A stretch of DNA of 64,000 bases from the NCBI GenBank assembly GCA_021613535.1, contig CP075494.1, positions 4,526,001 through 4,590,000 on the forward strand. The letters run 5' to 3'. The position numbers and the translations under genes are program-made. Positions 115 through 59,913 of the stretch are shown piece after piece. The first letter of the stretch is position 1; the number at the start of each line of letters is the position of its first letter. The stretch is from Adineta vaga (Eukaryota > Animalia > Rotifera). The notes under the pieces were generated by a model that had not been told where the DNA came from, searched no databases, and saw only the letters and a list, made by a program, of their open reading frames with translations.

Positions 115-1725
115 TTATAGCAGGACTTTATCTTGATGTATGATTCCATATTTTTGTCTTAATTGATGTAATAATGTATGATTATATGAACAGGTAAGAT
201 TTTTTTGATTGTCAATAATACCTCCAATTTTCCATTGTCGATATTCATGAACAAGTTCTTCAATCCAAAAGTTAAAACAAAAAAATTTCGTTCGTTCCGA
301 TCTGATTGTTACTGATGAACAAAATTCTTTATCTTTTTCACACATTTCAATAAATAACTGTCCATCTTTCGCTAAATTTTCATATGGATTCACTGGTATT
401 CGAAATCCTTGAAGAATAAGTTGACCTGCTTGTCGAACTAACCTTACGATTTCATCTTTTTTAATACCTTTAATTCGTTCATTAATTGGATAATAAAGAC
501 CTTTAATATAAGGTATTCCACTGGTCATATATTGTTCACCATATGAAGTAAATACGTACTTAGTTTTATCCGAACCATCTGGTTTTAATCCTCCAAGATT
601 AATATGAACAGATCCATCGGAGAGAAATGTTTGATACATTTGACCAGTTCCTGGTGCACTAATATGAATATTCATTTGACGTAAGAGACGTAATTGTGCT
701 ATGAATAGATTATCTTGAAATGGCGATTGACTAAAATTTCTCAGTGGAACTTGTTCATAATGAAGATATGAAATATGAATCAATGGCCATTCACGTTGTA
801 AGTTTTGATTTAAATAAAAATTTGTATAATTATTAATTTCTTGAATTGCCTCTTTGATTTCTTGAATATCATCATCAAAAAAACGTTTATTATGAATAAT
901 ATATGCTTGAAGAATCTTATTCAATGATAGTTTTTGTCGAATTAATCCATGTTGTCGATACATTCGCTCACGAAATAATCGTGAACCATCTAATTCCAAA
1001 CCACCAGGTAATTGAAAATTTGATTGTGTACAACGTTGACACATTGTTCCACTTCCCATTATGATTTCATCAAACATAAACCAGCGTCGTAAAGACATTT
1101 CTCTTAACATTGTTTCTTTAATGATCGGAAGACCAGAAAATTGTTGATAAATATCTTCACTCCAACATTTCTCACAATCACGAAAATCTGTAAAAAGTCG
1201 AAACGGTTGAAGATGTCGAGGAGTAAATCGAATTAGTGCAAGATAAGCTGGATAGAGACCATCAAATAATGCATGACCAATATTATATTGCCAATCTTGA
1301 ATAAAATAAACAGTTGGATCAGGAATAATAGTTGGTTCAGCGATCGTTCGAACATAATCTTCTAAAGAACGATAAGAATCAAATTCACGTTCTGCTATTA
1401 CTGTTGACCAAACTTGAAGAGAATTTGTTCGAACGGAATAATTTGGTAGAGATGTTCCTTTGACTTTGAAAATCATAAATCCACTATTGATATAATATAA
1501 ATTTTCAAATAAACAAGATTGATTTATCAATGAACCTACACAACGAATACGTGTTTCAAACGTTTTATTTTTTTCATCAATCGATGTTGATTTAATTTGA
1601 AGTATAACAGATTTGACCATCACTTTCTGTCTTACAATAACGAAGAGAAGAATAAGACTGATAATAATAATTAAGAATTTAACAAATGATTTTATTGATG
1701 ATGCCATCTTTCGTCTAATCAACAT
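115..1725 (-). CDS. GT61-like (DUF563-type) type II membrane glycosyltransferase
   Basis: Intronless 536-aa ORF with an N-terminal TM anchor. NIGHALFD and HISAPGTGQMYQTFLSDGSVHINL resemble GT61 motifs. Clear paralog at 49496-51194. Confidence 0.65.
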   Translation of the reverse strand: MLIRRKMASSIKSFVKFLIIIISLILLFVIVRQKVMVKSVILQIKSTSIDEKNKTFETRIRCVGSLINQSCLFENLYYINSGFMIFKVKGTSLPNYSVRTNSLQVWSTVIAEREFDSYRSLEDYVRTIAEPTIIPDPTVYFIQDWQYNIGHALFDGLYPAYLALIRFTPRHLQPFRLFTDFRDCEKCWSEDIYQQFSGLPIIKETMLREMSLRRWFMFDEIIMGSGTMCQRCTQSNFQLPGGLELDGSRLFRERMYRQHGLIRQKLSLNKILQAYIIHNKRFFDDDIQEIKEAIQEINNYTNFYLNQNLQREWPLIHISYLHYEQVPLRNFSQSPFQDNLFIAQLRLLRQMNIHISAPGTGQMYQTFLSDGSVHINLGGLKPDGSDKTKYVFTSYGEQYMTSGIPYIKGLYYPINERIKGIKKDEIVRLVRQAGQLILQGFRIPVNPYENLAKDGQLFIEMCEKDKEFCSSVTIRSERTKFFCFNFWIEELVHEYRQWKIGGIIDNQKNLTCSYNHTLLHQLRQKYGIIHQDKVLL

Positions 1726-3002: not shown

Positions 3003-3901
3003 ATGACTTTGTTCACATCTGTTCTCATCGCTTGGATTGCATTGATAATTATCGGCTCTTATTTTATTCATTCGATTCAGAATTTTTCTCTTCGAATTCT
3101 TCTAACATTCATTCCATGTGTTACATTAACATGAATTACTTCTCAAAATCTTCCTATACTTCATATAACGTCAACGTTAATCGTTGCAATAACTTGGCTG
3201 GTGTCAATTCGTTTGATTCATCTCATAAATGTTTTCAAAAAATCAGTCATTAACATTTCAATCGTTTCTCTTAGAAATTCTTTGGATATTTTTTCCATTT
3301 CGAATAGAACAATCCATGAAAAATCAATGGTCGATTAATTGTACATAACACAAGTTAGTTTTGCACGAATTCTTATGTTCTAAATACATCGATCATGACA
3401 ATATCATATATTCTTGACGTCGAAGCTGTTTTTATTCGAATTCTAACCAAAGATAAATATACAATCGAATCATTTACAGATTTTCCAATTTCAAGTACAT
3501 CATTGCGAGAATTTTGGGGTCGACGATACAATCATTTTGTTGACACTATTTTCAAAGAATCAATATTTGAACCAATTTGTAAAGAATTTTCAAGTTCAAC
3601 AATCGGTGGATTAATTACTTTTATCGTCAGTGGTCTTTTACATATTTATTTAACATCCGTTCTCTTTAATGATTATTCATTCTTAATTCTAACATTTCTG
3701 TTATTCTTCTTACATGGTTTAGTTTGTTGTTTCGAAGCAAATATAAAAGTTAAATTGCCTCATTATATTGGTTGGTTAACAACACATTTATTTCTTTTAC
3801 TAACTACAGGACAAGGATCAACATTTATTCTGTTAAATCCTCCACCACTGATTGATTCAAAATGGATACCAAAACTATTCGTACCTAATTTTTGCCCTTG
3901 A
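3003..3901 (+). pseudogene. MBOAT_2 / wax-synthase-like membrane-bound O-acyltransferase, disrupted
   Basis: SLREFWGRRYN and FIVSGLLH motifs in ORF 3395-3901. The hydrophobic N-terminus (MTLFTSVLIAW...) has an in-frame TGA at ~3132 and further frameshifts/stops before 3395. Confidence 0.7.
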
Positions 3902-4846: not shown

Positions 4847-6025
4847 ATGACTTCTATTCTCAGTCGTAGACTTTTATCTTATAAAAATATTCGTATTATT
4901 TATGTAATAGTGGTAATCACTATTCTGACAAAAATCATTAGTTTTTGTTCGTATATCGAAAATTTTATTCGTGTATGACTCATATTCTTTTTTCTATATA
5001 GTTCTATCAAAAAACGTGACTTCTTCTTTCCCAGCAAATTCTGAAGAAAATCTTATTTATCATAATAATGGAATTGCATATGATTATTATTCGAAAGATG
5101 AACTTCGAAAAGCACAAATCGGTTATCAATGGAAGATTTGGTCACTTCCACATAATGTCAAATATCATCAGATATCTCCATTTACTCGATCAAAACTTTC
5201 GTATGTTGATATAATTTATATCATGACCAGTTCACGGTTGATTGAACGACAACAACATTTGAAAAAAGTCTTTCATCGACAAGGAATTTCCATGGAATCA
5301 GTCCATTGGAGGATGAAATGGAATCAAACAACATATAATTCTTCTCGTTCCTATGTTTATCAACGACTTAATCTCAAAGATAAACCATTAGGTAGGCTAT
5401 CGAACTCGAACTCATTCACATTCATATAAACTGAACATTCTTAGATCGAAATCAACAACGACGATGTCCAATAACAATGGAACATGTTGATGTTTGGTAT
5501 GAAATAGCGAAGGAAAAGATTCGTCTAGCATTAATTCTCGAAGATGATGTGATATTTGTTCCATTTTTCAAAGAGAAATTTCTTCGCATGATTTCCACAG
5601 CTATTCATGTGGGCGCATTACAATTGAATCGAACATGTGTCGAACGAAGAGAAGGACATATATCAAAGGATGAACGGATCGAACAAAATCCTATGTTTGT
5701 GATTGGTTCATGTTTTCATTTGCATGATGAATATTTTCGACAATCTTCATCCAATGCTTTTCCATTACTATCAACACAAAAAATGAATGCATCTAGATGT
5801 ACACATGCTTATCTCTTGACATCATGTTCAGCTCAAGCACTGGTAGAACAAATTCATAAGCAAAAGAATGACTTTGTTAATTCTGATTTCTTTCAAAATC
5901 ATTTATTTCGATTATCATCAACACTTCAGTCGTTTTGGATAGATCCCCCATTAGCTTATCAAGGAAATCAAATAGTTGATCATGATCAGATCAAAAGTTT
6001 TCAAGGTCAAACACAAAACGAATAA
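4847..6025 (+). CDS. Glycosyltransferase family 25-like protein (3 exons)
   Basis: ALILEDDV and CTHAYLLT motifs with an N-terminal TM. Intron 5392-5444 (GTAGGC...TTAG) joins ORFs 4971-5429 and 5477-6025 in frame. A first intron is probable at 4941-5001. Confidence 0.75.
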
Positions 6026-6048
6026 AACACTTATTTTTTTAATCTTTT

Positions 6049-8335
6049 TTATTCAATTTTTTTTACACATACATTGTTTCTATAGTATTGAATTGTCTTT
6101 TGAATTCCTATGGAAAGTGAAGTCATTTGAAACGATGGAAAAATTCTTTTGAATTCCGAAGTATCAGCAGTACGACGTAATGGACCATCTTTATTCATAT
6201 CATTATCGAATTGAATCGATCCATTGTAATTTGCATGATGACATATAAGTTGAACAATATCAGCAACAGAGACTTCTTCACCTGCTACAATTAAAGGTTG
6301 TTGTTCATTATAATTTTCTAATGTCCATAAAACAATTTCAGCAAGATCTTGTGCAAACATAATTTGTCGTAAGGGTTTACCTGTTCCAATCATTTGTAAA
6401 GGAATGGATAAATCTTGTTTCTTTTGATTTTCTATTTTTGCAATCAATGCATTTACAAGTGGCGCTGTATTTGGATTGAAATCTCCATAAGCACCAAAGA
6501 AATTCCCTGGTAAAATCGTAACAAAATTACATTGATATTCTTTTCGATACCATTCTGTAAGTTGTGCTAATGATCGTTTAGCATATGCATAGGATTCCGA
6601 TGCTGGATGAGGTAATCCATCGTAAATGGAAGACGTATCGATTGGGAATTGTGCATTTTTTGGAAGCATAACTGTTGATAAGATAGAAACTAATTTTATT
6701 TGACCAATCCATGTTTGAAATTCGAATGTTGTTTGAAGAATATTATTATTTATTGTAACATTATTAATCCAAAATTCCACTGGTTTAGCGGACATTTCTT
6801 GAATGGATGCAAGATGTGCGGCACAATGAATAACACGTGTTGGTTGAAAACGTTTGAAAATCTTTTCAACATCTTTAACTTTTCGAAGATCTCCATCTTG
6901 ACGAGTAATAAAAATCCATTCGGAATCATTTGTTTTAAGCTTTAATGGTTTGGAATCGATTATTACTGATGAATCTGATTGACCTAAGAGAACATCACGA
7001 ATATATTGACCTAACATTCCATTACTTCCTGTAATTAATGTAAAATGATATGGTGAAAATGGAAATGCTAAGATGATCTCTACAAGTTTATCAATAATGG
7101 TTTGATCAAGAGACATTTGATGAACACCAATGAAAAATCCACGTGAATGAATAACTTCTGCACCTGGATAATTTTCCGGATGTTCTTCATCACAAAATAT
7201 TGATATGCAAGGTTGACGAATAAAATTTCCGCTGATAATCGGACGATTCTCAATTCCATTTTTTTCAAGATATTTTAAAAATTCGAAACGTTGATGTGTA
7301 TAACATCGATGTAATAAAAATCCTAAACCAAACCATGCTGGATCTACATCTTCCGAAGGTTCAATCAATGACATTAATGATGAAAATCTTTCATAACGTG
7401 CAAATGTTTCTTTTATAAGACGAAAATTTTCTCGACGATTCTTATTAAATTGATAAAGTTTATCTAATTGAACATTTAACATTGCACCTTGAACTTCTAA
7501 TGGTCGAAGATTATAACCCATATTTATAAATAAAAATCGACAATCAATATCGGGATACAATTCTTCAACTTGTTGACGATTCGTTATGTGTCTAGTCCAC
7601 CCATGGGCCCGTAGACAACGAAGAAAATTATAATCTTCTTCTGTATGACATGTTATCATTCCTCCTTCACCACTTGTAATATGATGTGAAAAATAGAATG
7701 AAAATGTTCCAAAATCTCCAAATGTTCCTAACATTTTCTGTTGACAGAAACTTCCTAATGATTCGCATGTATCTTCAATTAAAATAAGTTGATGTTCTTG
7801 AACAAATTTCATTAATAATTTCATATTAATCGAATTTCCAAGAACATGAACAGCCATAACTGCTTTCACACGATTGGTTAATTTACGTTCAAGTTCATGA
7901 AGAGATATATTGAAAGTACGTGGATCAACATCGACAAAGATTGGACGAAGACCATTTTGAATTAATGGAAATACACTAGTTGACCAACAAACCGCTGGAA
8001 CAAGAACATGATCACCTGGATCACAATGTTTTGGACGTAATTTATTTGCTATTGCTGAAACGCAATAAATTAGCTGAACTACCCGAATTAACCATGACAG
8101 CATAGGATACACCAAGAATTTGTGCAAATTTCTTTTCAACATGTTCAATTTCTTTACCTAAAGTTAATCGACCAGATAATAAAACTTCAGTCATTGCTAA
8201 AATTTCTTCTTCACCAAATGGATTCATTGCTAATGGAAATAAAGTTGATGTATCTTGTTTTTCCGCTGAACGACGAGCATTCCATTCCTTTGCGATAATC
8301 ACTTTCCATATTGGTTTGTTCGTTTCACTATTCAT
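6049..8335 (-). CDS. Fusion: ColD-like PLP-dependent GDP-4-keto-6-deoxymannose 3-dehydratase + GDP-fucose-synthase-like SDR reductase (one frameshift at ~8062)
   Basis: N-domain has DegT-family motifs NSGSSANLL, EDTCESLG, FSFYFSHHITSGEGG (His in place of the Schiff-base Lys) and LRAHGWTR. C-domain has LITGSNGMLG, YAYAK and GTGKPLRQ. ORFs 8042-8353 and 6049-8148 overlap and switch frame at NLL/VSA. Confidence 0.85.
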
Positions 8336-8578
8336 GTTCACTTGATTATACAAGTCGTAATTCTTCTATGCTCTAAGATACAATTAAAATGAATGATGAA
8401 AAGAAATGTTTCTTTTTTTTCTTTCTTTGATCGATAGTTACTAATACTTCTCGATAAAATGTTGAGTAAAATTATAAAGAAATGACAAGCATACATTTCA
8501 TTTTGTGAACGCTTACAAAGGAGAGTAGAGGAAAGGAAAGAAATTACAATTACTTCGGTTAATCGATAAAAAAAGAAC
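8336..8578. promoter_or_regulatory. Short divergent (bidirectional) intergenic region
   Basis: ~240 bp between the head-to-head start codons of the dehydratase-reductase and transporter-GT genes. Promoter function is inferred from position only. Confidence 0.5.
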
Positions 8579-10927
8579 ATGTGCTATCAAAATTTCTTCC
8601 GTTTTAATAAAAGATCTTGGCAAGAATCGAAAGCAATGATTTCATTGATAATCTATTGTCTATCTGGTACATTTCTGACTTTATTTAATAAACTTACAAT
8701 CATTCGTTTTCCCTATACAAATATTCTTTTAATTTTACAAAACACTTTCGCTGTTATTCTATTAATATTCTGTTCTCAATGTTTTCGTTCAACATTTGGA
8801 TCTCTACCACGATTAAATCGAATGGTTTTTCAAGTTTGGTTACCATTAGTTATCTTGTTTGTTCTCATGTTAATATCAAGTTTAATTGCATTAATCTATG
8901 TTAGTGTACCAACAGTTATTGTCATGAGAAATTTAACAACTTTATTTGTTTCACTTCTTGAATATTTGTTTCTAAAACATAAAACAACACGTTTTTCTCT
9001 TGTGATATTAATTGGCATGTTATGTGCTGCAATACTCTATGCAAAACATGATTTTACATTTAATATTCGCGGTTATATTTGGTTAGGTGTGAATATTCTT
9101 AGTACAAGTATTTATCAGATTTATATTAAGAAAATTATTCATTTGGTTTATTTTGAAAATATTGGATCGATTGGAATGTCGTATTATAATAATTTATTAT
9201 CTTTACCTTTACTTTGGATAATTGCATGTGGAACAGGAGAATTCAAGAGATTAATCATGGATTCTAATTATGAAATGATTTCGATTCTTTTAATAATTAT
9301 TTCAAGTATTCTTGGCTTTTTATTAAGTATATCGGCATTTACTTTAAACAAATTAATATCTGCAACTTCAATGATGGTTGCTAATAATGTGAACAAATTC
9401 TCTGTTATTCTCCTCAGCGAACTATTTATTAAATCAACTCTTGATCTAGTTGCTTCTATTGGTGCAATATCCGTTCTTTGTCTTGGATGGTTATATTCTC
9501 AAACAACAAAATCAACATTAAAAACAATCTGTCTTATCATTACTATTCTTTTGATGATCTTAGGTGCAATTATTGAATACAAATATACTAAAACTACCGA
9601 AGATTATTATAGTCAATTTCAACCGATTATTTTCAATAAAACAATATTACGCCGATCTCTAAATACTCAGCAAGGAAATGAAATTTATCAATCATATCTT
9701 CCCATATCCAAGAAATCCTATCATATATCTCATCCTAAAATTGATATACGACATGTTCAAAACTATTCTCTTCCACAAAATTGTCGAAATCGAAATGCAT
9801 CGATATGGAAAACATGTGATATTCGTTCTTGTCAACCTTATACTCGTCTACCGAAATGGAATTATCCCCAACAAACAATTTTGCAAGAAAAAACTGATGA
9901 ATTTATTCATCATCTATTAGAAATAGCTTGGGGTAGAAATCCACCTTGGATTGATTTATATTTACGTAGTAGTTGTAATGGTATTATGGAAATGCAATAT
10001 CTTCTTGAAAGTATCAAACTTTTTTGGCCAAGATTTTTAGGTTCTATTATCATTGTTCTTGATGTAAATGATGAGAAAATTTTAAAATATATCTTACCGA
10101 ATCAACCAACACATCATTATATCATTAGTTTTGAACATACACCTTGTTTACCTGGACGAATTTTTAATCAATATAGTTATTTAAATCTTGATCGACATTC
10201 ACATGCTGATTATATTTTAACAGTTGACAGTGATTGTATATTTCATTCACCAGTGACACCGGATTTAATTTTTCGTGATGGAAAAATTATTTTATCGTCA
10301 TCACAAACATTTCAACGAGATCTCTGGTTAAAACCATTGGAAGCTATTATGGGCCTGGGAATGTATGAACGACATTATATGGTAACACAACCAGTGACTT
10401 TTGCTCGATCAACCTTTTCATCATTTCGAAAATGGTTTTGTCAAACGAAAGGACAATGTTATGAAGATCAGCTTACACAATTATTACCAAAATATTATCA
10501 AGAATTTTGTTGGATGTGTCAACTTGGTACTTATTTAGAACGAGGACATGTAGAGAAAAGTGAATATGATACATATTGGTATCAACATTTAGATGATCCA
10601 TCATTAAAACCAATATTACGATATGCAATTCATATTCCATATGAACCATTTAATACAACACAATGTCGAGAGGTATTATGTTATGAGAAAACAGCAAATG
10701 AAATTATTAAGCAAGGATTATGTCGAGCATTTGGTCCATCAATATTTCAATTTTGTATGAATTATAAACATTTTAATTATATAAATAATGTCACATTTTC
10801 TTATGCCCAATTCGAAATTCAAGCAGCAGAAAAATCTGAACGAATCAATGTATTAAATGATTATTTAAAACGTTTAGCAAATGTAACAATGATGGCTTAT
10901 GATTTTAAGAATGTAGGACAATGTTAG
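8579..10927 (+). CDS. Fusion: SLC35/GONST-like GDP-sugar transporter + GT-A-fold glycosyltransferase-like domain
   Basis: ~10 TM segments with RNLTT, SYYNNLLSLP (cf. Vrg4 FYNN) and SATSMMVANNVNK (cf. GALNK/GVVNK). An extra TM follows, then a soluble Cys-rich domain with a DXD motif (YILTVDSDCIF). Intronless. Confidence 0.8.
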   Translation: MCYQNFFRFNKRSWQESKAMISLIIYCLSGTFLTLFNKLTIIRFPYTNILLILQNTFAVILLIFCSQCFRSTFGSLPRLNRMVFQVWLPLVILFVLMLISSLIALIYVSVPTVIVMRNLTTLFVSLLEYLFLKHKTTRFSLVILIGMLCAAILYAKHDFTFNIRGYIWLGVNILSTSIYQIYIKKIIHLVYFENIGSIGMSYYNNLLSLPLLWIIACGTGEFKRLIMDSNYEMISILLIIISSILGFLLSISAFTLNKLISATSMMVANNVNKFSVILLSELFIKSTLDLVASIGAISVLCLGWLYSQTTKSTLKTICLIITILLMILGAIIEYKYTKTTEDYYSQFQPIIFNKTILRRSLNTQQGNEIYQSYLPISKKSYHISHPKIDIRHVQNYSLPQNCRNRNASIWKTCDIRSCQPYTRLPKWNYPQQTILQEKTDEFIHHLLEIAWGRNPPWIDLYLRSSCNGIMEMQYLLESIKLFWPRFLGSIIIVLDVNDEKILKYILPNQPTHHYIISFEHTPCLPGRIFNQYSYLNLDRHSHADYILTVDSDCIFHSPVTPDLIFRDGKIILSSSQTFQRDLWLKPLEAIMGLGMYERHYMVTQPVTFARSTFSSFRKWFCQTKGQCYEDQLTQLLPKYYQEFCWMCQLGTYLERGHVEKSEYDTYWYQHLDDPSLKPILRYAIHIPYEPFNTTQCREVLCYEKTANEIIKQGLCRAFGPSIFQFCMNYKHFNYINNVTFSYAQFEIQAAEKSERINVLNDYLKRLANVTMMAYDFKNVGQC

Positions 10928-12671: not shown

Positions 12672-13057
12672 CATATAGAAAATGAAGAAGGATGGTTCAG
12701 ACATGAGTTATTATTGATTCTGATGTTAGATCAAATACATATAACTAAAAATATGTGTATAATTCTAATCACACAGATATTAAGTAAGAATGACAATAAT
12801 TTCAATTTACAGTTTATTTCGATAAATCATAAAATTATTCAAATTTTCACTAACAACCATGGAGAAATCATTTGAGTTCGTACAATCTATGAAACGAGGA
12901 TGATCATGCAAGATCGAAGAGTCGAAACGAAAAACAAAAAGAAAACAACGTTACCATCAGTAGCTCTCTACTTTTCTTATCACATTAACACTGTAGAAAT
13001 AATTGATAAGAAAAGTTGACATACTTTGCAATCATTACATTTCGTCGTTATACATCG

Positions 13058-14650
13058 ATGATGTCGAAGTATTTTTCATTTTTTATTTTCATTTCTCTTC
13101 TATTTGTATCATCTTCATCGGATTCGATTTTATCAGAAAAAGAATTGAAATTAATTCGCTATCTATCCTATTTAACACATCTTCAAACAACATCAACAAC
13201 CAATATTACTTGGAATGGTTGGGAAAAAAATTACGATGGTCCTCAACTTGGTTTAGATTCGATTCGATATCCTCTCGCTCATATCGGTTACACCGCTGCA
13301 GCTTTAGCATATCGAACGCCGAACTATCGTGAATTAGCTTTAAATATTTTAAATGATACCATAAAACGTATGTTAACTATACAAGTATGGGGATATATCG
13401 ATCAATATTGGAAGAAAACATCGACATTTCCAGATCCTGTTTATTATGAAAATATTATGTATAGTGGACATCTTTTACAATTAATAACATTATATGAAAG
13501 TATTTCTGGAGATTTTATCTATGATACACAAGGCTTTGATTTCATTTGGAATAAAGATGGACAATCTGTAACTAAAATTCATTATACAACAACACAACTT
13601 GCTTATGTTATTTATCGTCAAATGAATGAAGAATCTTCAGCAGGTGTTTCATGTGAACCAGGATGGGTCTATACAATTTGTCAAAATCATCCACATCTTG
13701 GTTTAAAACTCTATGATATCGTTCGTAATAGTACTACAACATTTTCACAAATATCATCAAAATGGAAAGATTTTCTCAATCATCATGCACTCGAAGATAT
13801 TCCATTGTATAAAAAAGATCGATATTTTAAAATGTTATATCAACGTTCTACTCATATTTGGGTACCATTTTTTGCTGCGACAGGTAATGATGGATGGGCA
13901 TTAGCGTGGATGTCATCTTGGTACGATCAAAATCAAACATCAAATTTTATCTGCAATGGATGGGAAGTAATGTATAAGAATAAATATTGGATAGTGTCGA
14001 AAAATCATAGTTTATCCAGTTGTTACCTCGAAGCGGGTGGTTATATTGGTGTTCGAATGCAAATGAATCGTTGGATAGCAACATCATTTTATCCCATTGT
14101 TGAAAAGCAATGTTCAACAACGAAGACAGAAAAATTAACATGTGCTTATTCATGGTTTGAAAATGATTTCGGATTGTTAGTAGATACAGATCATGATGGA
14201 TATTTCGAATCGTTTTACTATGAAACCAATACAGTTTATTCGAATTGGGTTACCACAAATGTTTTATTGTCATTGTTAATGGGAGAGAACGGAGATGAGA
14301 CAAGAGAATTTTTAAGAAAAATTTATACAACAAAATTTCATGAAAAATTTCTTAATGATGAACCAGAAATTTTAGCTGTTCAATATCCATCAGTACGTGT
14401 TACACGGGCACAATATGATTCGAACACAAAACTATTAATTCTTAATTTCAACACAGAGAAACCAATGATTTTATCAACACAATTCGATTTAAGATATCCA
14501 TATTCATTTTTAACTATTTCAAATATGACACGTGATGGTACACGTGATGGATTTACATCAAAACAGATAGCCAACAATAGAATAAGAATTGAATATTCTT
14601 ATAATACTTTGGAAAGACAAAATACAGAATTTCATATATTATTTCATTAA
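13058..14650 (+). CDS. Linalool dehydratase/isomerase-like secreted protein
   Basis: Signal peptide. IRYPLAHIGY, ENIMYSGHLLQLITLYE and SCEPGWVYTICQNH match the LinD family, including both Cys of the CEP...C motif. Intronless. Confidence 0.75.
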   Translation: MMSKYFSFFIFISLLFVSSSSDSILSEKELKLIRYLSYLTHLQTTSTTNITWNGWEKNYDGPQLGLDSIRYPLAHIGYTAAALAYRTPNYRELALNILNDTIKRMLTIQVWGYIDQYWKKTSTFPDPVYYENIMYSGHLLQLITLYESISGDFIYDTQGFDFIWNKDGQSVTKIHYTTTQLAYVIYRQMNEESSAGVSCEPGWVYTICQNHPHLGLKLYDIVRNSTTTFSQISSKWKDFLNHHALEDIPLYKKDRYFKMLYQRSTHIWVPFFAATGNDGWALAWMSSWYDQNQTSNFICNGWEVMYKNKYWIVSKNHSLSSCYLEAGGYIGVRMQMNRWIATSFYPIVEKQCSTTKTEKLTCAYSWFENDFGLLVDTDHDGYFESFYYETNTVYSNWVTTNVLLSLLMGENGDETREFLRKIYTTKFHEKFLNDEPEILAVQYPSVRVTRAQYDSNTKLLILNFNTEKPMILSTQFDLRYPYSFLTISNMTRDGTRDGFTSKQIANNRIRIEYSYNTLERQNTEFHILFH

Positions 14651-24495: not shown

Positions 24496-25986
24496 TTAGC
24501 ACATGGAATCTTTTTTTTCATTTATATCGTCATTAATCTTCGTCCATTCAAATCCTAATAATTGTAATCCAATGATGGTACCATCACTCAATGATTCAAA
24601 CTTGATGGAAAAACCATTTTCCTTGACAAAAAAATCCATATCAGATTCTGGATACAGAAGATATTCTTGTCTACTCGAAAGTTGGTTAGCGCGTAATTGA
24701 TTACTTTCAACGGTAATCAGTAAAGTAGCGTTTTCTTGAGCCAAGAAATATGTTCCAGCAAATCTGGCTAATTTTGAGAGTGACAATGTCACTATAGTTT
24801 TCGTTATTGGTTTATGAAAATCCCATTCGTAAGTAATGGCAATACTTCGGACGAGTTCCGTAATTAAATTCATTCCATCATCTGAATTAGTCATAATTAC
24901 TGCACCTTTACCTGAATATGCAGTACCAAATAAGAAAGATCGAAATCCTTCATTAGCACCAGTATGACCAAAAGCTAAAGAGTCTTGATCACCATAAACA
25001 GTAGGACCTAAACCCCAATCGCCTAAGTGTTTCGTCAACATCTGTTCAGTCATATCTTGTGAAAGAATTTGATTCGATTGATTTTGTAGAGATTTTTGTA
25101 TTTCAATTATATAAAGAGCTAAATCAGATGGTGTAGTCCATAGTCCAGCGGCTGCACTTTCTGGATATATGTACCAATTGTCAGGTATTTTTTCACCACG
25201 TAATCGATGACCGATGCTTGCTCGTAGTTGCCATGATCGAGGTAATGTCTGTTCAAAAGTACTATGCTTCATACCAATGGGAGAAAGTATAGAACGTTGC
25301 ATTAATGAAGAAAAACTCCATGCAGTCACATCTTCTAATAATTGTTGTAAGAGAACATATCCACCACCTGAATATCGCCAAAGAGTTCCTGGAATCTGAT
25401 CAGAAATAATAGGCCGTGAATTTGCTGGTTTTTCTCCGTTGAGTATTTGAATAAGTGTAGGTATTGTTTCATTGTGAGTATAACCGGGAAAGCCATGCAC
25501 AGTAAGACCAGCTGTATGTGTAAGAAGCCCTCGTAATGTAATCGGTTTGTTTTCTGTGAAAGATGTATTTTTTACTTTCCATGAACGAAGATATGTATTG
25601 ACATTTTCATCTAGATCAAGTCTATCTTGTTCTACCAAACGGAGAGCCGCCATTGCGGACACTGTTTTGCTAATAGAAGCTGCTTGAAATAATGTTAATG
25701 TATTGGCTTTCTTCACATGGTTCACATCGAGATGACCGTAAGCTTTTGTCCATTCGATGACTCCGTCATTTATTATAGCTATACTAACAGCAGGTACATG
25801 ATAATGTTTCATTCGTTCGTGAATTGTAAATGTTGAAGACAATTCACCTTCAATTTCAATCGCGTAACGTAATCCATTTTCCACTTCTTTTATTTTTGAA
25901 ATTGTATTATCATCAGTTAATATAGTTTGTAAGAAGCACAGCTGCCAGAATAATGTAATCACAAGCAAAATCGCTTTATGTCGCAT
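24496..25986 (-). CDS. Serine hydrolase, class C beta-lactamase/PBP family with C-terminal DUF3471-like domain
   Basis: Signal peptide; FQAASISK (SxxK), LLTHTAG, YSG and HTG motifs; intronless. Confidence 0.9.
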   Translation of the reverse strand: MRHKAILLVITLFWQLCFLQTILTDDNTISKIKEVENGLRYAIEIEGELSSTFTIHERMKHYHVPAVSIAIINDGVIEWTKAYGHLDVNHVKKANTLTLFQAASISKTVSAMAALRLVEQDRLDLDENVNTYLRSWKVKNTSFTENKPITLRGLLTHTAGLTVHGFPGYTHNETIPTLIQILNGEKPANSRPIISDQIPGTLWRYSGGGYVLLQQLLEDVTAWSFSSLMQRSILSPIGMKHSTFEQTLPRSWQLRASIGHRLRGEKIPDNWYIYPESAAAGLWTTPSDLALYIIEIQKSLQNQSNQILSQDMTEQMLTKHLGDWGLGPTVYGDQDSLAFGHTGANEGFRSFLFGTAYSGKGAVIMTNSDDGMNLITELVRSIAITYEWDFHKPITKTIVTLSLSKLARFAGTYFLAQENATLLITVESNQLRANQLSSRQEYLLYPESDMDFFVKENGFSIKFESLSDGTIIGLQLLGFEWTKINDDINEKKDSMC

Positions 25987-57587: not shown

Positions 57588-58751
57588 GATAAATGTCTTT
57601 ATGTTCAATCGTACTTAGAGCTTTTTCAAAAATATACAACGTATTTCAAAACAAGAGAGAGATAGGTAATGTTGTTTCAAGTTTTAAAATATCAAGGTCG
57701 TATTAACATTAGTAGAATGAAATAAAATTACAAAAAAAAGAATATCTACATATTTTATTTAAAGAGAGAATATTATATATATAGTTGCTCGTTCTTTTCT
57801 TTTCAAAAACTGAACTCATCATAAAACATCCACAGATATTCTTTTTAATTACACAACCAGTCATAATCAGGGTGATTTGACGTCATAAAAGAATTCTTTA
57901 AATGACATCCAACTATCAAGGCAAACATTTTTATTGTTGGAAAAAACGTTTTTCCGAAGAAAATGTGTATGAATCAATGCGCACTTTTTCGTATGCGTTT
58001 AGGCGCGTTAGACGGCGACTAAAAGTTGAATTGCGTTCTTCGAAATTATTATTGTTATATGATGTATTGTTAAAACGTAATTGTTCAGTAGATTGAATAA
58101 TGATGGAAAATAGAAGACATGATATATCTGATAATTGTAAGAGTAAAAAGGATAGTGAGGGTGAATGAGTTTACTATAGAATAATTCCAAGCTACGTATA
58201 CGACGATAGTTTCGAAAAGAGTTTAATCGATTCACTGTCAAATAAGTTCAGAATCCAATTCTTTTTTTTGTTAGGTTAAGAGAAACTGAATTGGGAACAA
58301 TTTTCATGTGAATTAATGAATGTCAATTGAATTTAAGTTTTGAAATGAATTGGAAATGGTGATATCGAAATTATGTTTTTATGAAAGAGTGAAAGCCATT
58401 TTCGAACATGTGCGATTAATCCAACTAAAATAATTCCTCATTGTTTTGATGATTTTGTTCTTCCGTTTGATTGTAATGAATGTTTTCCAGTTTTATCGTT
58501 TATAAAATGTTGTTCCTTATATTGTATTCGTTCATTTGAACTTATTTTTTTTCAAATCATATTGCTGTAATAGTGACTCGATATATATTTCATCGAGATA
58601 TTTCCAATTGTCATGATCTCATTCGCGTTTGAACTACATTTGGGATCGTGGACATCAGAGCTCGGACGAGTACAAGCAAATACTTGTTGAGTCAGCAAAT
58701 GATGTATATATCTTTTTTTGTTTGTCATCGTTACCATGTATTTGTTATCTT

Positions 58752-58777
58752 TATATATATATATATATATATATATA
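58752..58777. repeat. (TA)n microsatellite
   Basis: Directly visible TA run. Confidence 0.9.
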
Positions 58778-58815
58778 GTTATATACTTCTTTTAGAAGGT
58801 GAAGACAAAAGAAAA

Positions 58816-59913
58816 ATGAAAAATATTGTGTTGATATTGTTGTATTTATCTTCAACATGTGGACATCTTTGTTTATGGCAACCAATGCAACGAGGAAATA
58901 TGAGTTTAAATCCTCCAGGTTCTCATGATTGTTATAGAAAAATTCAACCTTGTGGTGGATTTAATTCTTCAACATCAAGAGAGAGAACAACAATTGAATC
59001 TGGTTCCATTTATCAAGTTTTGTTTCAACAACATATAAATCATTATTATCCATTAAATCCTGGTAAACTTGATATTTCATTTGCTCATGGATTAGAACCT
59101 TTAGAAGAAGATTTTCAAATATTATCGTCACTTAATGATTATAATCCAATGAATCATAATACTCAAACTAATTTTTCAATAAATGTGCAAATACCCAATG
59201 AAGAATGTGACCAATGTGTCTTAAGAGTTCGATATATAACAAATAATCCAGATGAAGAAGATCATGGAATGACTTTTTATCAATGTTCTGATATTAAACT
59301 AATTAAAACTTCTCAAAATTCTTATAAATCAAATTTTAATCCAATTCAATCAATAAACCATAAAAATGATTCACATGATTGCTGTTCTCCATCAAGTTTT
59401 CAAACATCATTTATTCATGTTATACCAGATATTGATTATTTGAGTACAGGTATTGTTTATTATGATAAATTATTGAAACAAATGCGTTTTCAAATGAATA
59501 TGATGGGAATTAATTACAATATGTGGATGAATTTTACATCAGGAAAACAATACTATCATAATGTGAACAATAACAGTTGCCATTTATTTGGATTAAATTA
59601 TTGGAATGATTGGTGTTATGGAAATACCTTTAACCAAACTGAAGATTTTACTAAATCTAATATTTCATGTACATTTGATTTATCAAATAATTGTAATCAA
59701 TGGATCAATGGAGATTTCTTATTTGAATCAACACTTAATAGATGTTATCCATCGTCGTTGTTCAGATTATCAAGTAATGAAAAAACAATTTATTTCGATC
59801 AAAAAGATGGACCATTTTCACCTGAAATCTTTCAACCAGATCCAATTTGTTTGAAACAAAATCAAATTTATTCAAATCATTGTTTAAAACATTTGATTAA
59901 TCCTTTAAATTGA
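58816..59913 (+). CDS. Secreted LPMO-like (N-terminal His) domain fused to an ependymin-like domain
   Basis: Signal peptide MKNIVLILLYLSSTCG followed directly by His; PCGG, HINHY, CDQCVLRVRY and FYQCSDI motifs. The C-domain has the pattern CCSP...YYD...MRF...FQPDPIC. Confidence 0.6.
   Translation: MKNIVLILLYLSSTCGHLCLWQPMQRGNMSLNPPGSHDCYRKIQPCGGFNSSTSRERTTIESGSIYQVLFQQHINHYYPLNPGKLDISFAHGLEPLEEDFQILSSLNDYNPMNHNTQTNFSINVQIPNEECDQCVLRVRYITNNPDEEDHGMTFYQCSDIKLIKTSQNSYKSNFNPIQSINHKNDSHDCCSPSSFQTSFIHVIPDIDYLSTGIVYYDKLLKQMRFQMNMMGINYNMWMNFTSGKQYYHNVNNNSCHLFGLNYWNDWCYGNTFNQTEDFTKSNISCTFDLSNNCNQWINGDFLFESTLNRCYPSSLFRLSSNEKTIYFDQKDGPFSPEIFQPDPICLKQNQIYSNHCLKHLINPLN

Follow-up and report, generated by a model that had tools for sequence, protein, structure and literature searches.

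Three adjacent genes of the bdelloid rotifer Adineta vaga may form a glycosylation module that makes, imports and attaches a 3,6-dideoxy-D-hexose, a reading that we hold with modest confidence. They occupy positions 4847-10927 of the window, by which we mean the whole stretch of 64,000 nucleotides that was analyzed (chromosome 5, C5:4526001-4590000, in a haploid assembly of 6 contigs and 100.8 Mb). A GT25-family glycosyltransferase gene (4847-6025, plus strand, three exons) is followed on the minus strand by the coding region (8335-6049) of a fusion between a ColD-type 3-dehydratase and a GDP-fucose-synthase-like 4-reductase, of about 760 amino acids (aa) when its frame is continuous, and then on the plus strand by a single open reading frame (ORF) of 782 aa (8579-10927), a transporter/GT-A fusion with a Pfam TPT match and a C-terminal domain. 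The GT25 exons and the frame pieces of the dehydratase fusion were searched as separate pieces, not as joined whole proteins. An earlier reading of the letters alone, here called the preliminary description, had proposed three tightly packed genes at this place: a GT25 gene, a ColD-like dehydratase fused to a reductase of the short-chain dehydrogenase/reductase (SDR) type, and a GDP-sugar transporter fused to a GT-A domain. All of these were recovered, and its spacings are exact, with 23 bp between the two stops (that of GT25 ends at 6025; the stop codon of the fusion is 6049-6051) and 243 bp, given there as about 240, between the head-to-head starts (ATG at 8335-8333 and ATG at 8579). We find its account of the three-gene cluster largely right and its pathway logic reasonable. 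What does not stand is the term 'operon-like': the strands run plus, minus, plus, convergent and then divergent, so that no single one-strand transcript could cover the genes, and the locus is a divergent/convergent gene cluster. The divergent intergenic region (8336-8578) is a possible shared promoter of both fusion genes, and its head-to-head spacing arrangement recurs in Adineta ricciae (contig L001).

The dehydratase-reductase fusion

The first half of the minus-strand gene is a ColD-like dehydratase domain dependent on pyridoxamine 5'-phosphate (PMP; 7114-8335, minus strand). It matches Pfam DegT (DegT/DnrJ/EryC1, PF01041) at E = 3e-62 and has the fold-type I aminotransferase architecture. 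Its closest structures in the PDB are four ColD entries (E = 4e-66 to 2e-64; 2gms at 4e-66 over residues 38-358), with the CDP enzyme E1 at 2e-50 and perosamine synthases at 1e-29. The motif FSHHITSGEGG aligns with YSHHIATMEGG of ColD, and because the H188N and H188K mutant structures mark the column of its first His (codon CAT, 7686-7684; second His, 7683-7681), that residue is taken as the catalytic one that replaces the aminotransferase Lys. The His-His pair is kept in all 94 of the 94 fusion homologues covering the site. The pattern C-x-C-x7-C, the [2Fe-2S] cysteine motif that sets E1 and SpnQ apart from ColD, is absent from the domain. The lack of an iron-sulfur motif fits ColD, not E1 or SpnQ (review PMC8987622). 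An E1-type CDP enzyme was rejected on this ground and because the score is lower than that against ColD, and an aminotransferase or perosamine synthase was rejected because His, not Lys, stands in the catalytic column. Since His replaces Lys in a ColD-like domain free of the iron-sulfur motif, an amino-sugar product appears unlikely. With ColD as the nearest relative, a GDP-fucose-synthase-like fusion partner and GDP-mannose 4,6-dehydratase (GMD) encoded in the genome, we infer that the substrate is GDP-4-keto-6-deoxy-D-mannose. Multi-exon GMD genes lie on A. vaga chromosomes C3 and C6 and the substrate would therefore be available from the host, in keeping with the earlier suggestion that the animal itself makes this intermediate.

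The second half is a 4-reductase domain (6073-7038, minus strand, placed by alignment to human GDP-fucose synthase, 4e5y), an extended SDR with a Pfam Epimerase match at E = 6e-39. It scores 5e-54 against the GDP-fucose synthase of Naegleria, 1.5e-52 against the human enzyme and 1e-22 against that of E. coli, and by sequence it derives from a eukaryote-type GDP-fucose synthase. The catalytic triad is kept, with Ser at 6678-6676, Tyr at 6591-6589 and Lys at 6579-6577. The two epimerase positions are changed, to Val (6672-6670) for Cys and to Pro (6462-6460) for His; all five codons were checked. These positions correspond to what we take to be the epimerisation residues of GDP-fucose synthase, Cys109/His179 in E. 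coli and Cys116/His186 in human. The roles of this Cys/His acid/base pair in epimerisation were reportedly worked out by Lau and Tanner in 2008. Across 95 fusions, the Cys column holds Val in 54, Phe in 16, Glu in 9 and Cys in 4. As a control, the SDRs in bacterial ColD loci were located by tblastn, and all 7 of them (L125, L127, L140, L151, L162, L170, L185) read Ser-Cys-Tyr-Lys-His, as do several giant-virus fusions (those of the L029 type, for example), while Ser-Val-Tyr-Lys-Pro is found in rotifers and in one giant-virus lineage (L025/L030). With both epimerase residues lost, C5 is therefore probably not inverted by the rotifer reductase. When a ColD-like GDP-sugar dehydratase is combined with C4-reductases and no epimerase, the 3,6-dideoxy products have D-arabino and D-lyxo configuration (PMC10440746). 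By this precedent and the loss of the epimerase residues, the likely product is a GDP-3,6-dideoxy-D-hexose, tyvelose-configured or its 4-epimer, and not L-colitose. A different arrangement is seen on three giant-virus-like contigs (L034, L037 and L038; 130-428 kb), in which Asn and Arg occupy the epimerase positions of the fused SDR and a second, unfused SDR that retains Cys and His is encoded about 7 kb from it; two distinct GDP-deoxy sugars may be made by these viruses.

The fusion is not rotifer-specific. Besides the bdelloid homologues of A. ricciae, A. steineri and Rotaria socialis (60-78% identity), it occurs on giant-virus contigs, in the dinoflagellate Yihiella, in Chromera velia, in Bathycoccus and in hundreds of environmental sequences, and by sequence it forms an undescribed family common to giant viruses, dinoflagellates, chromerids and bdelloids. 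One relative, P0029, with 59% identity, is encoded on a contig of 159 kb that is dense in intronless genes and also filed in IMG/VR; genes for glycosyltransferases, two sugar methyltransferases, DNA methyltransferases, RNase III and an Erv1 oxidase are among them. Further fusions come from giant-virus metagenome-assembled genomes (MAGs) and from contigs as long as 428 kb. In bacteria, mainly stand-alone ColD was found, at 51% identity or less (56% at one locus). In a quick maximum-likelihood tree of the dehydratase domain, from a short search and rooted at the midpoint, the bdelloids form one clade (SH-aLRT 100) within a bacteria-free clade (98) of giant-virus, Chromera, dinoflagellate and environmental sequences. 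A direct bacterial donor was rejected on this placement, provisionally in view of the kind of tree. The bacteria-free clade and the eukaryote-type reductase half together suggest that the two halves were joined in a eukaryote or giant virus and that bdelloids received the fusion complete, a conclusion that we regard as provisional.

Two side observations concern the wider family. A second group of bdelloid fusion paralogues (A. steineri and environmental sequences: P0014, P0017-P0019, P0022-P0025, P0031, P0044, P0045, P0047) keeps the His-His pair and has lost parts of the SDR triad (for example Pro stands for Ser, Phe for Tyr, and Glu or Gln for Lys), so that its reductase half looks inactive; no copy of this paralogue was found in the A. 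vaga assembly. In Bathycoccus (L028) and on a giant-virus-like contig (L025), TylF/Methyltransf_24 sugar O-methyltransferases are encoded close to the fusion, which suggests methylated dideoxy sugars in those systems.

The transporter-transferase fusion and the GT25 gene

The first ~310 residues of the 782-aa ORF form a nucleotide-sugar transporter domain (8579-9517, plus strand) of the drug/metabolite-transporter fold, with a Pfam TPT (PF03151) score of 32-33 bits against a cut-off of 30. Their best PDB matches, the GDP-mannose transporters Vrg4 (5oge) and 9s35, align at E = 4e-16. The motif YYNN (9182-9193) aligns with FYNN of Vrg4 and YYNN of 9s35 and is kept in the homologues, with single substitutions in a few. 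The column of the Vrg4 motif GALNK reads NNVNK here (9383-9397) and NN(V/A)NK in nearly all homologues, a replacement that argues against GDP-mannose as the cargo and not against a GDP-sugar. Beyond the ten-helix part that aligns with Vrg4 there is an extra hydrophobic helix (residues 314-332; 9518-9574, plus strand), with a Kyte-Doolittle mean of 2.68 over 19 residues. Both termini of Vrg4 lie on the cytosolic side, and an eleventh helix would therefore place the domain that follows in the lumen.

That C-terminal domain (9836-10927, plus strand) is read as a GT-A-like, DUF6492-like nucleotide-sugar transferase. Its neighbours in a language-model atlas are DUF6492 clusters (score 0.95), and it is at best a distant relative of that family. 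With an AlphaFold (AF2) model of the domain (pLDDT 75.7, pTM 0.79), almost all of the first 50 Foldseek matches listed were GT-A-fold enzymes (best E = 2e-5; TM 0.35-0.5), and VIA-align gave a Z of 11.3 with GlcNAc-1-phosphotransferase and values of 9-10 with many GT-A transferases, over about 200-240 residues. The model thus points to a GT-A-like nucleotide-sugar transferase fold, Z values being equally compatible with the transfer of a sugar or of a sugar-1-phosphate. A DSD motif of the DxD type (10226-10234) is kept in nearly all homologues that span the site. The domain has 33 relatives, unnamed and mostly from rotifers or environmental samples. A. vaga also has a full-length, intronless paralogue of the whole transporter-transferase, 49% identical, on chromosome 3 (G000:C3:19144372-19146693, L011; P0180); its public annotation seems limited to the C-terminal 364 aa, and the ORFs around it encode an RNA-dependent RNA polymerase (RdRP) and a kinase, with no sugar genes nearby.

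The GT25 gene has exons at about 4847-4970, 5002-5391 and 5445-6025; its product carries a hydrophobic anchor at the N-terminus and an EDD motif in the part encoded by exon 3. Exon 3 alone matches Pfam PF01755 (Glyco_transf_25) at E = 9e-10 (39.2 bits against a gathering cut-off of 24) and is also recovered by a genome search. Frame and RNA were checked with the contigs of four public runs aligned to the window. A spliced contig of run X12 skips exactly the 53-nt GT..AG intron at 5392-5444 (plus strand), and X12 is therefore taken to be RNA. The junction of exons 1 and 2 would be made across a putative 31-nt first intron. An X12 contig has a loose end before 4943, 30 letters of which have no match within the window, and in run X4 a heterozygous TA insertion follows 4994, within the putative first intron; the 5' structure given for the gene is provisional.

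Proposed pathway, linkage and rival explanations

The following scheme would account for the three genes. The module would have been acquired by horizontal transfer before the sampled bdelloid lineages split. In the cytosol, host GDP-mannose 4,6-dehydratase would supply GDP-4-keto-6-deoxy-D-mannose, the ColD-type domain would strip its 3-hydroxyl with PMP and the catalytic His and without an iron-sulfur cluster, and the SDR domain would reduce C4 with NADPH, C5 probably staying uninverted. The product would be a GDP-3,6-dideoxy-D-hexose of D-arabino (tyvelose) or D-lyxo configuration rather than GDP-L-colitose. The transporter would import this GDP-sugar into the Golgi. Through the eleventh helix it would be tethered to a GT-A-like, lumenal domain bearing a DxD motif, so that one polypeptide would couple import with the transfer of the sugar, or of the sugar-1-phosphate, to an acceptor. 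The adjacent GT25 enzyme would probably build or extend the acceptor. Substrate, product stereochemistry, topology and a sugar shared by the three proteins are predictions of the scheme. That bdelloids place a tyvelose-type 3,6-dideoxy-D-hexose, made from GDP-mannose, on their glycans by way of a non-epimerising, GDP-linked fusion enzyme and a transporter-transferase fusion is a narrower proposal, which we put forward tentatively and would not ourselves wager on.

Synteny among bdelloids, raised in the preliminary description as a check of the cluster, holds in part. A. ricciae has the identical three-gene set and layout (L001), the transporter-transferase adjoins the dehydratase fusion on two further contigs of the bdelloid clade (convergent in L192, tandem in L196), and GT25 orthologues adjoin the fusion in A. 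ricciae and A. steineri; the linkage fails in Rotaria socialis and at loci L193 and L195. The dehydratase/transporter pair is thus found adjacent in three orientations across bdelloid lineages. Between A. vaga and A. ricciae, dN/dS is 0.11, 0.20 and 0.17 for the three genes, and for the dehydratase fusion it is 0.11 against both A. ricciae and Rotaria; all three genes are under purifying selection. X12 has low-depth contigs over all three genes, and for X15 and X22, two runs presumed to be RNA, coverage extends over a small part of the cluster each in contig-level data, by which levels cannot be ranked. Expression of the cluster appears low.

Several observations weigh against the proposed module. 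Its link between synthesis, import and transfer would rest on adjacency and motifs only. In A. steineri, GT25 is the only partner near the fusion paralogue, whose SDR is degenerate; in Rotaria socialis, neither partner gene lies within 10 kb of the dehydratase fusion; and no dehydratase was found near the transporter-transferase at L193, at L195 or at the A. vaga C3 paralogue. Among 160 viral and bacterial loci, no relative of the transporter, of the DUF6492-like domain or of GT25 was found near the fusion, and the pairing of the genes is therefore a bdelloid assembly. The Pfam DUF6492 score of the C-terminal domain (20.7 bits) is under the gathering cut-off of 22.9, and the structural matches of this domain are of moderate strength. 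UDP-sugars are the donors of the known GT25 enzymes. The RNA support consists of a few contigs of depth 2-5, and most runs guessed to be RNA contain almost none of the cluster stretch. Moreover, the reference allele of the dehydratase fusion is frame-broken at 8061-8065, through an assembly error or as a real null allele.

Of the other explanations, one keeps the chemistry and changes the sugar. The fusion could be the equivalent of ColD plus ColC and make GDP-L-colitose, if the fused reductase epimerises or if a host GDP-fucose synthase takes over the released 4-keto-3,6-dideoxymannose. ColD is indeed the nearest structural relative, the reductase is homologous to GDP-fucose synthase and ColC-type enzymes, A. 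vaga has other GDP-fucose-synthase-like loci, and the giant-virus fusions that retain Cys and His would fit. In the rotifer clade, however, Val and Pro stand where the epimerase pair would be, every SDR found beside bacterial ColD retains Cys and His, and a fusion would favour direct hand-over of the intermediate to the reductase it carries; we consider a colitose product unlikely. Alternatively, adjacency may be meaningless: foreign genes landed together, the fusion product is used elsewhere or for nothing, and the partners handle GDP-mannose, GDP-fucose or UDP sugars. The C3 paralogue devoid of neighbouring sugar genes, the absence of the pair at the Rotaria socialis and A. steineri loci, the loci L193 and L195 without a dehydratase, and the other foreign-looking genes of the window (below) would all be expected in that case. 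Against it stand the adjacency of the pair in three orientations in separate lineages, the family-wide replacement of the mannose motif with the guanine motif kept, and purifying selection on all the genes, so that we regard a chance neighbourhood as doubtful, if somewhat less so than a colitose product.

The frame break in the reference bears on another explanation, that the dehydratase fusion is a decaying pseudogene in A. vaga and the module defunct in this species. The reference copy has two bases fewer at 8061-8065 (minus strand) than the read contigs and the orthologues; its minus strand reads tta ttg c gtt at 8068-8059, and the frame shifts at 8062. The Rotaria and A. steineri orthologues are continuous ORFs, with LLAVSAI or LLSVSAI at this site. 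The NCBI gene model spans the break by a 28-nt GT..AG 'intron' (8056-8083) that drops the GSSANLL segment and with it ten conserved residues. We rejected this intron, because it excises a motif that is near-invariant in the fusion family and because the X12 contig reads through it unspliced; the public protein of the gene (P0001) is probably wrong. Contigs of the 2013 run X4 (depth ~72) and of the 2018 run X12, which come from two other studies, both carry an additional T after 8061 and an additional G after 8065, which restore exactly the orthologous reading frame, and the broken form is in no aligned contig of the four runs. Of 5,126 positions compared between the X4 contig and the window, 49 differ, and as X15 agrees with the window at some of them, two haplotypes exist; as both X4 and X12 carry the frame-restoring bases, at least one allele is intact. 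The break in a chromosome-level reference, the single copy in a haploid assembly and the very low RNA coverage are what a pseudogene would give. Against decay stand the presence of the two missing bases in contigs of both runs, the lack of any other stop across the 2.3 kb coding region, a dN/dS of 0.11 and the intact X12 contig that spans the site (8044-8192), from a run taken as RNA by its spliced GT25 contig, and we think decay of the gene improbable.

As to the neighbourhood, the window is AT-rich, with a flat GC content of about 30% throughout, and most of its other genes are ordinary for animals (bZIP, NHL, PAN, GPCR, LDLa, EGF, ankyrin, EXS); no further sugar genes were found in the remainder of the window. 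The preliminary description had placed an MBOAT acyltransferase remnant and a GT61-like gene within 5 kb. The former is there, as an MBOAT_2 match (3395-3901, plus strand; PF13813, E = 1.6e-9), counted here as a neighbour of the cluster; its ORF is not conserved beside the cluster in A. ricciae L001. The latter had to be dropped, as at E<=0.1 PF04577 matched nothing in the window region and none of the neighbouring ORFs that were tested. That the genome is an animal's is confirmed by the dehydratase fusion, which is 100% identical to A. vaga I4U23_023207. Contamination was rejected in view of the chromosome-scale contig, the flat 30% GC, the RNA-backed spliceosomal intron and the metazoan neighbours. 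A 544-aa ORF at 13016-14650 (plus strand) matches linalool dehydratase/isomerase (Ldi; E = 4e-41), a family unusual in animals, and is probably another foreign gene. Two more ORFs look foreign, at 24496-25986 (minus strand; beta-lactamase family, E = 9e-52) and at 58648-59913 (plus strand; LPMO_10/BIM1-like), these being ORF coordinates. Beside the cluster, a 536-aa ORF (115-1725, minus strand) with a weak match to Harbinger-type plant transposons may be a domesticated or decayed transposase.

Significance and comparison with known systems

3,6-Dideoxyhexoses are commonly regarded as sugars of bacterial O-antigens; in animals they are known from nematodes. The 3-dehydratases that lead to them have been reviewed as bacterial enzymes (PMC8987622), and foreign nucleotide-sugar and lipopolysaccharide enzymes of bdelloids figure in earlier work as pathway counts only (PMC3499245). 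Our literature search found no description of the dehydratase-reductase fusion, of the cluster or of a natural transporter-transferase fusion, in line with the preliminary description, which knew of none for the cluster. Nor did it find reports of 3,6-dideoxyhexose synthesis genes in an animal, of colitose in eukaryotes, of giant-virus 3-dehydratases, of nematode tyvelose biosynthesis or of rotifer glycans. A 2022 review of giant-virus glycans does not mention colitose, tyvelose or a 3-dehydratase (PMC9614988), and the viral fusion enzymes would therefore be undescribed themselves.

If the proposed module is real, it would represent the first pathway to a 3,6-dideoxyhexose to be defined genetically in an animal, with a testable gene set, and a second, non-CDP route to this class of sugars. 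It would also bring to light a large family of dehydratase-reductase fusions that has gone unstudied in giant viruses and protists, and whose epimerising and non-epimerising forms predict different sugars, and the natural joining of a nucleotide-sugar transporter and a lumenal transferase in one chain would bear on the channelling of donors in the Golgi. Foreign genes are common in bdelloids and the transfer itself is thus unsurprising; what would be added is a horizontally acquired function of several genes kept linked in an animal genome.

The nearest known system is the bacterial colitose pathway (ColD and ColC of E. coli O55 and Yersinia pseudotuberculosis), which takes the product of GMD as its starting point and likewise uses a PMP-dependent, DegT-fold enzyme that has His for Lys and lacks an iron-sulfur cluster, and then an SDR resembling GDP-fucose synthase, as is expected of the rotifer chemistry. 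In contrast to ColD and ColC, the rotifer enzymes are one polypeptide in an animal host, and unlike the SDRs beside bacterial ColD, the rotifer reductase lacks the Cys/His pair and is nearer to eukaryotic than to E. coli GDP-fucose synthase. The GDP-3,6-dideoxyheptose pathways of Campylobacter jejuni also pair a GDP-linked, pyridoxal 5'-phosphate (PLP)-dependent C3-dehydratase with a C4-reductase, and their reductases, without a separate C5-epimerase, give the D-arabino and D-lyxo products (Ghosh, Xiang and Raushel 2023, PMC10440746), the outcome predicted for the rotifer; they differ in their heptose substrates, in being separate proteins and in serving a bacterial capsule (PMC10440746). The CDP-tyvelose and CDP-ascarylose pathways of Salmonella and Yersinia likewise lead to 3,6-dideoxyhexoses, tyvelose among them, with His for Lys in E1 (PMC8987622). 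They are based on CDP-glucose, and E1 depends on a [2Fe-2S] cluster and on the reductase E3, whereas the rotifer protein has no such cysteine motif.

Nucleotide-sugar pathways are also known from giant viruses, as GMD/GMER in chloroviruses, viosamine and rhamnose in Mimivirus and RhaNAc in Megavirus (PMC9614988). Relatives of the fusion (59% identity) lie in glycosylation neighbourhoods of giant-virus-like contigs and giant-virus MAGs (GVMAGs); these loci differ from the rotifer cluster in having other transferases and methyltransferases and no transporter fusion. For the C-terminal domain of the transporter-transferase, the best fold matches are the Stealth-type hexose-1-phosphate transferases (GNPTAB, CpsY; Z 11.3) and the GT-A families GT6, GT8 and GT64 (Z 9-10), with which it would share the nucleotide-sugar-using GT-A-like fold and a DxD-like motif at a sequence identity of 6-16%. 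Among the GDP-mannose transporters of the Vrg4/GONST family, the transporter half aligns along its length with Vrg4 and keeps the nucleotide motif, with GALNK replaced by NNVNK. Finally, Golgi transporters and transferases are known to associate physically as non-covalent protein complexes (PMC6453868), whereas in A. vaga the two activities would be joined covalently through the extra helix.

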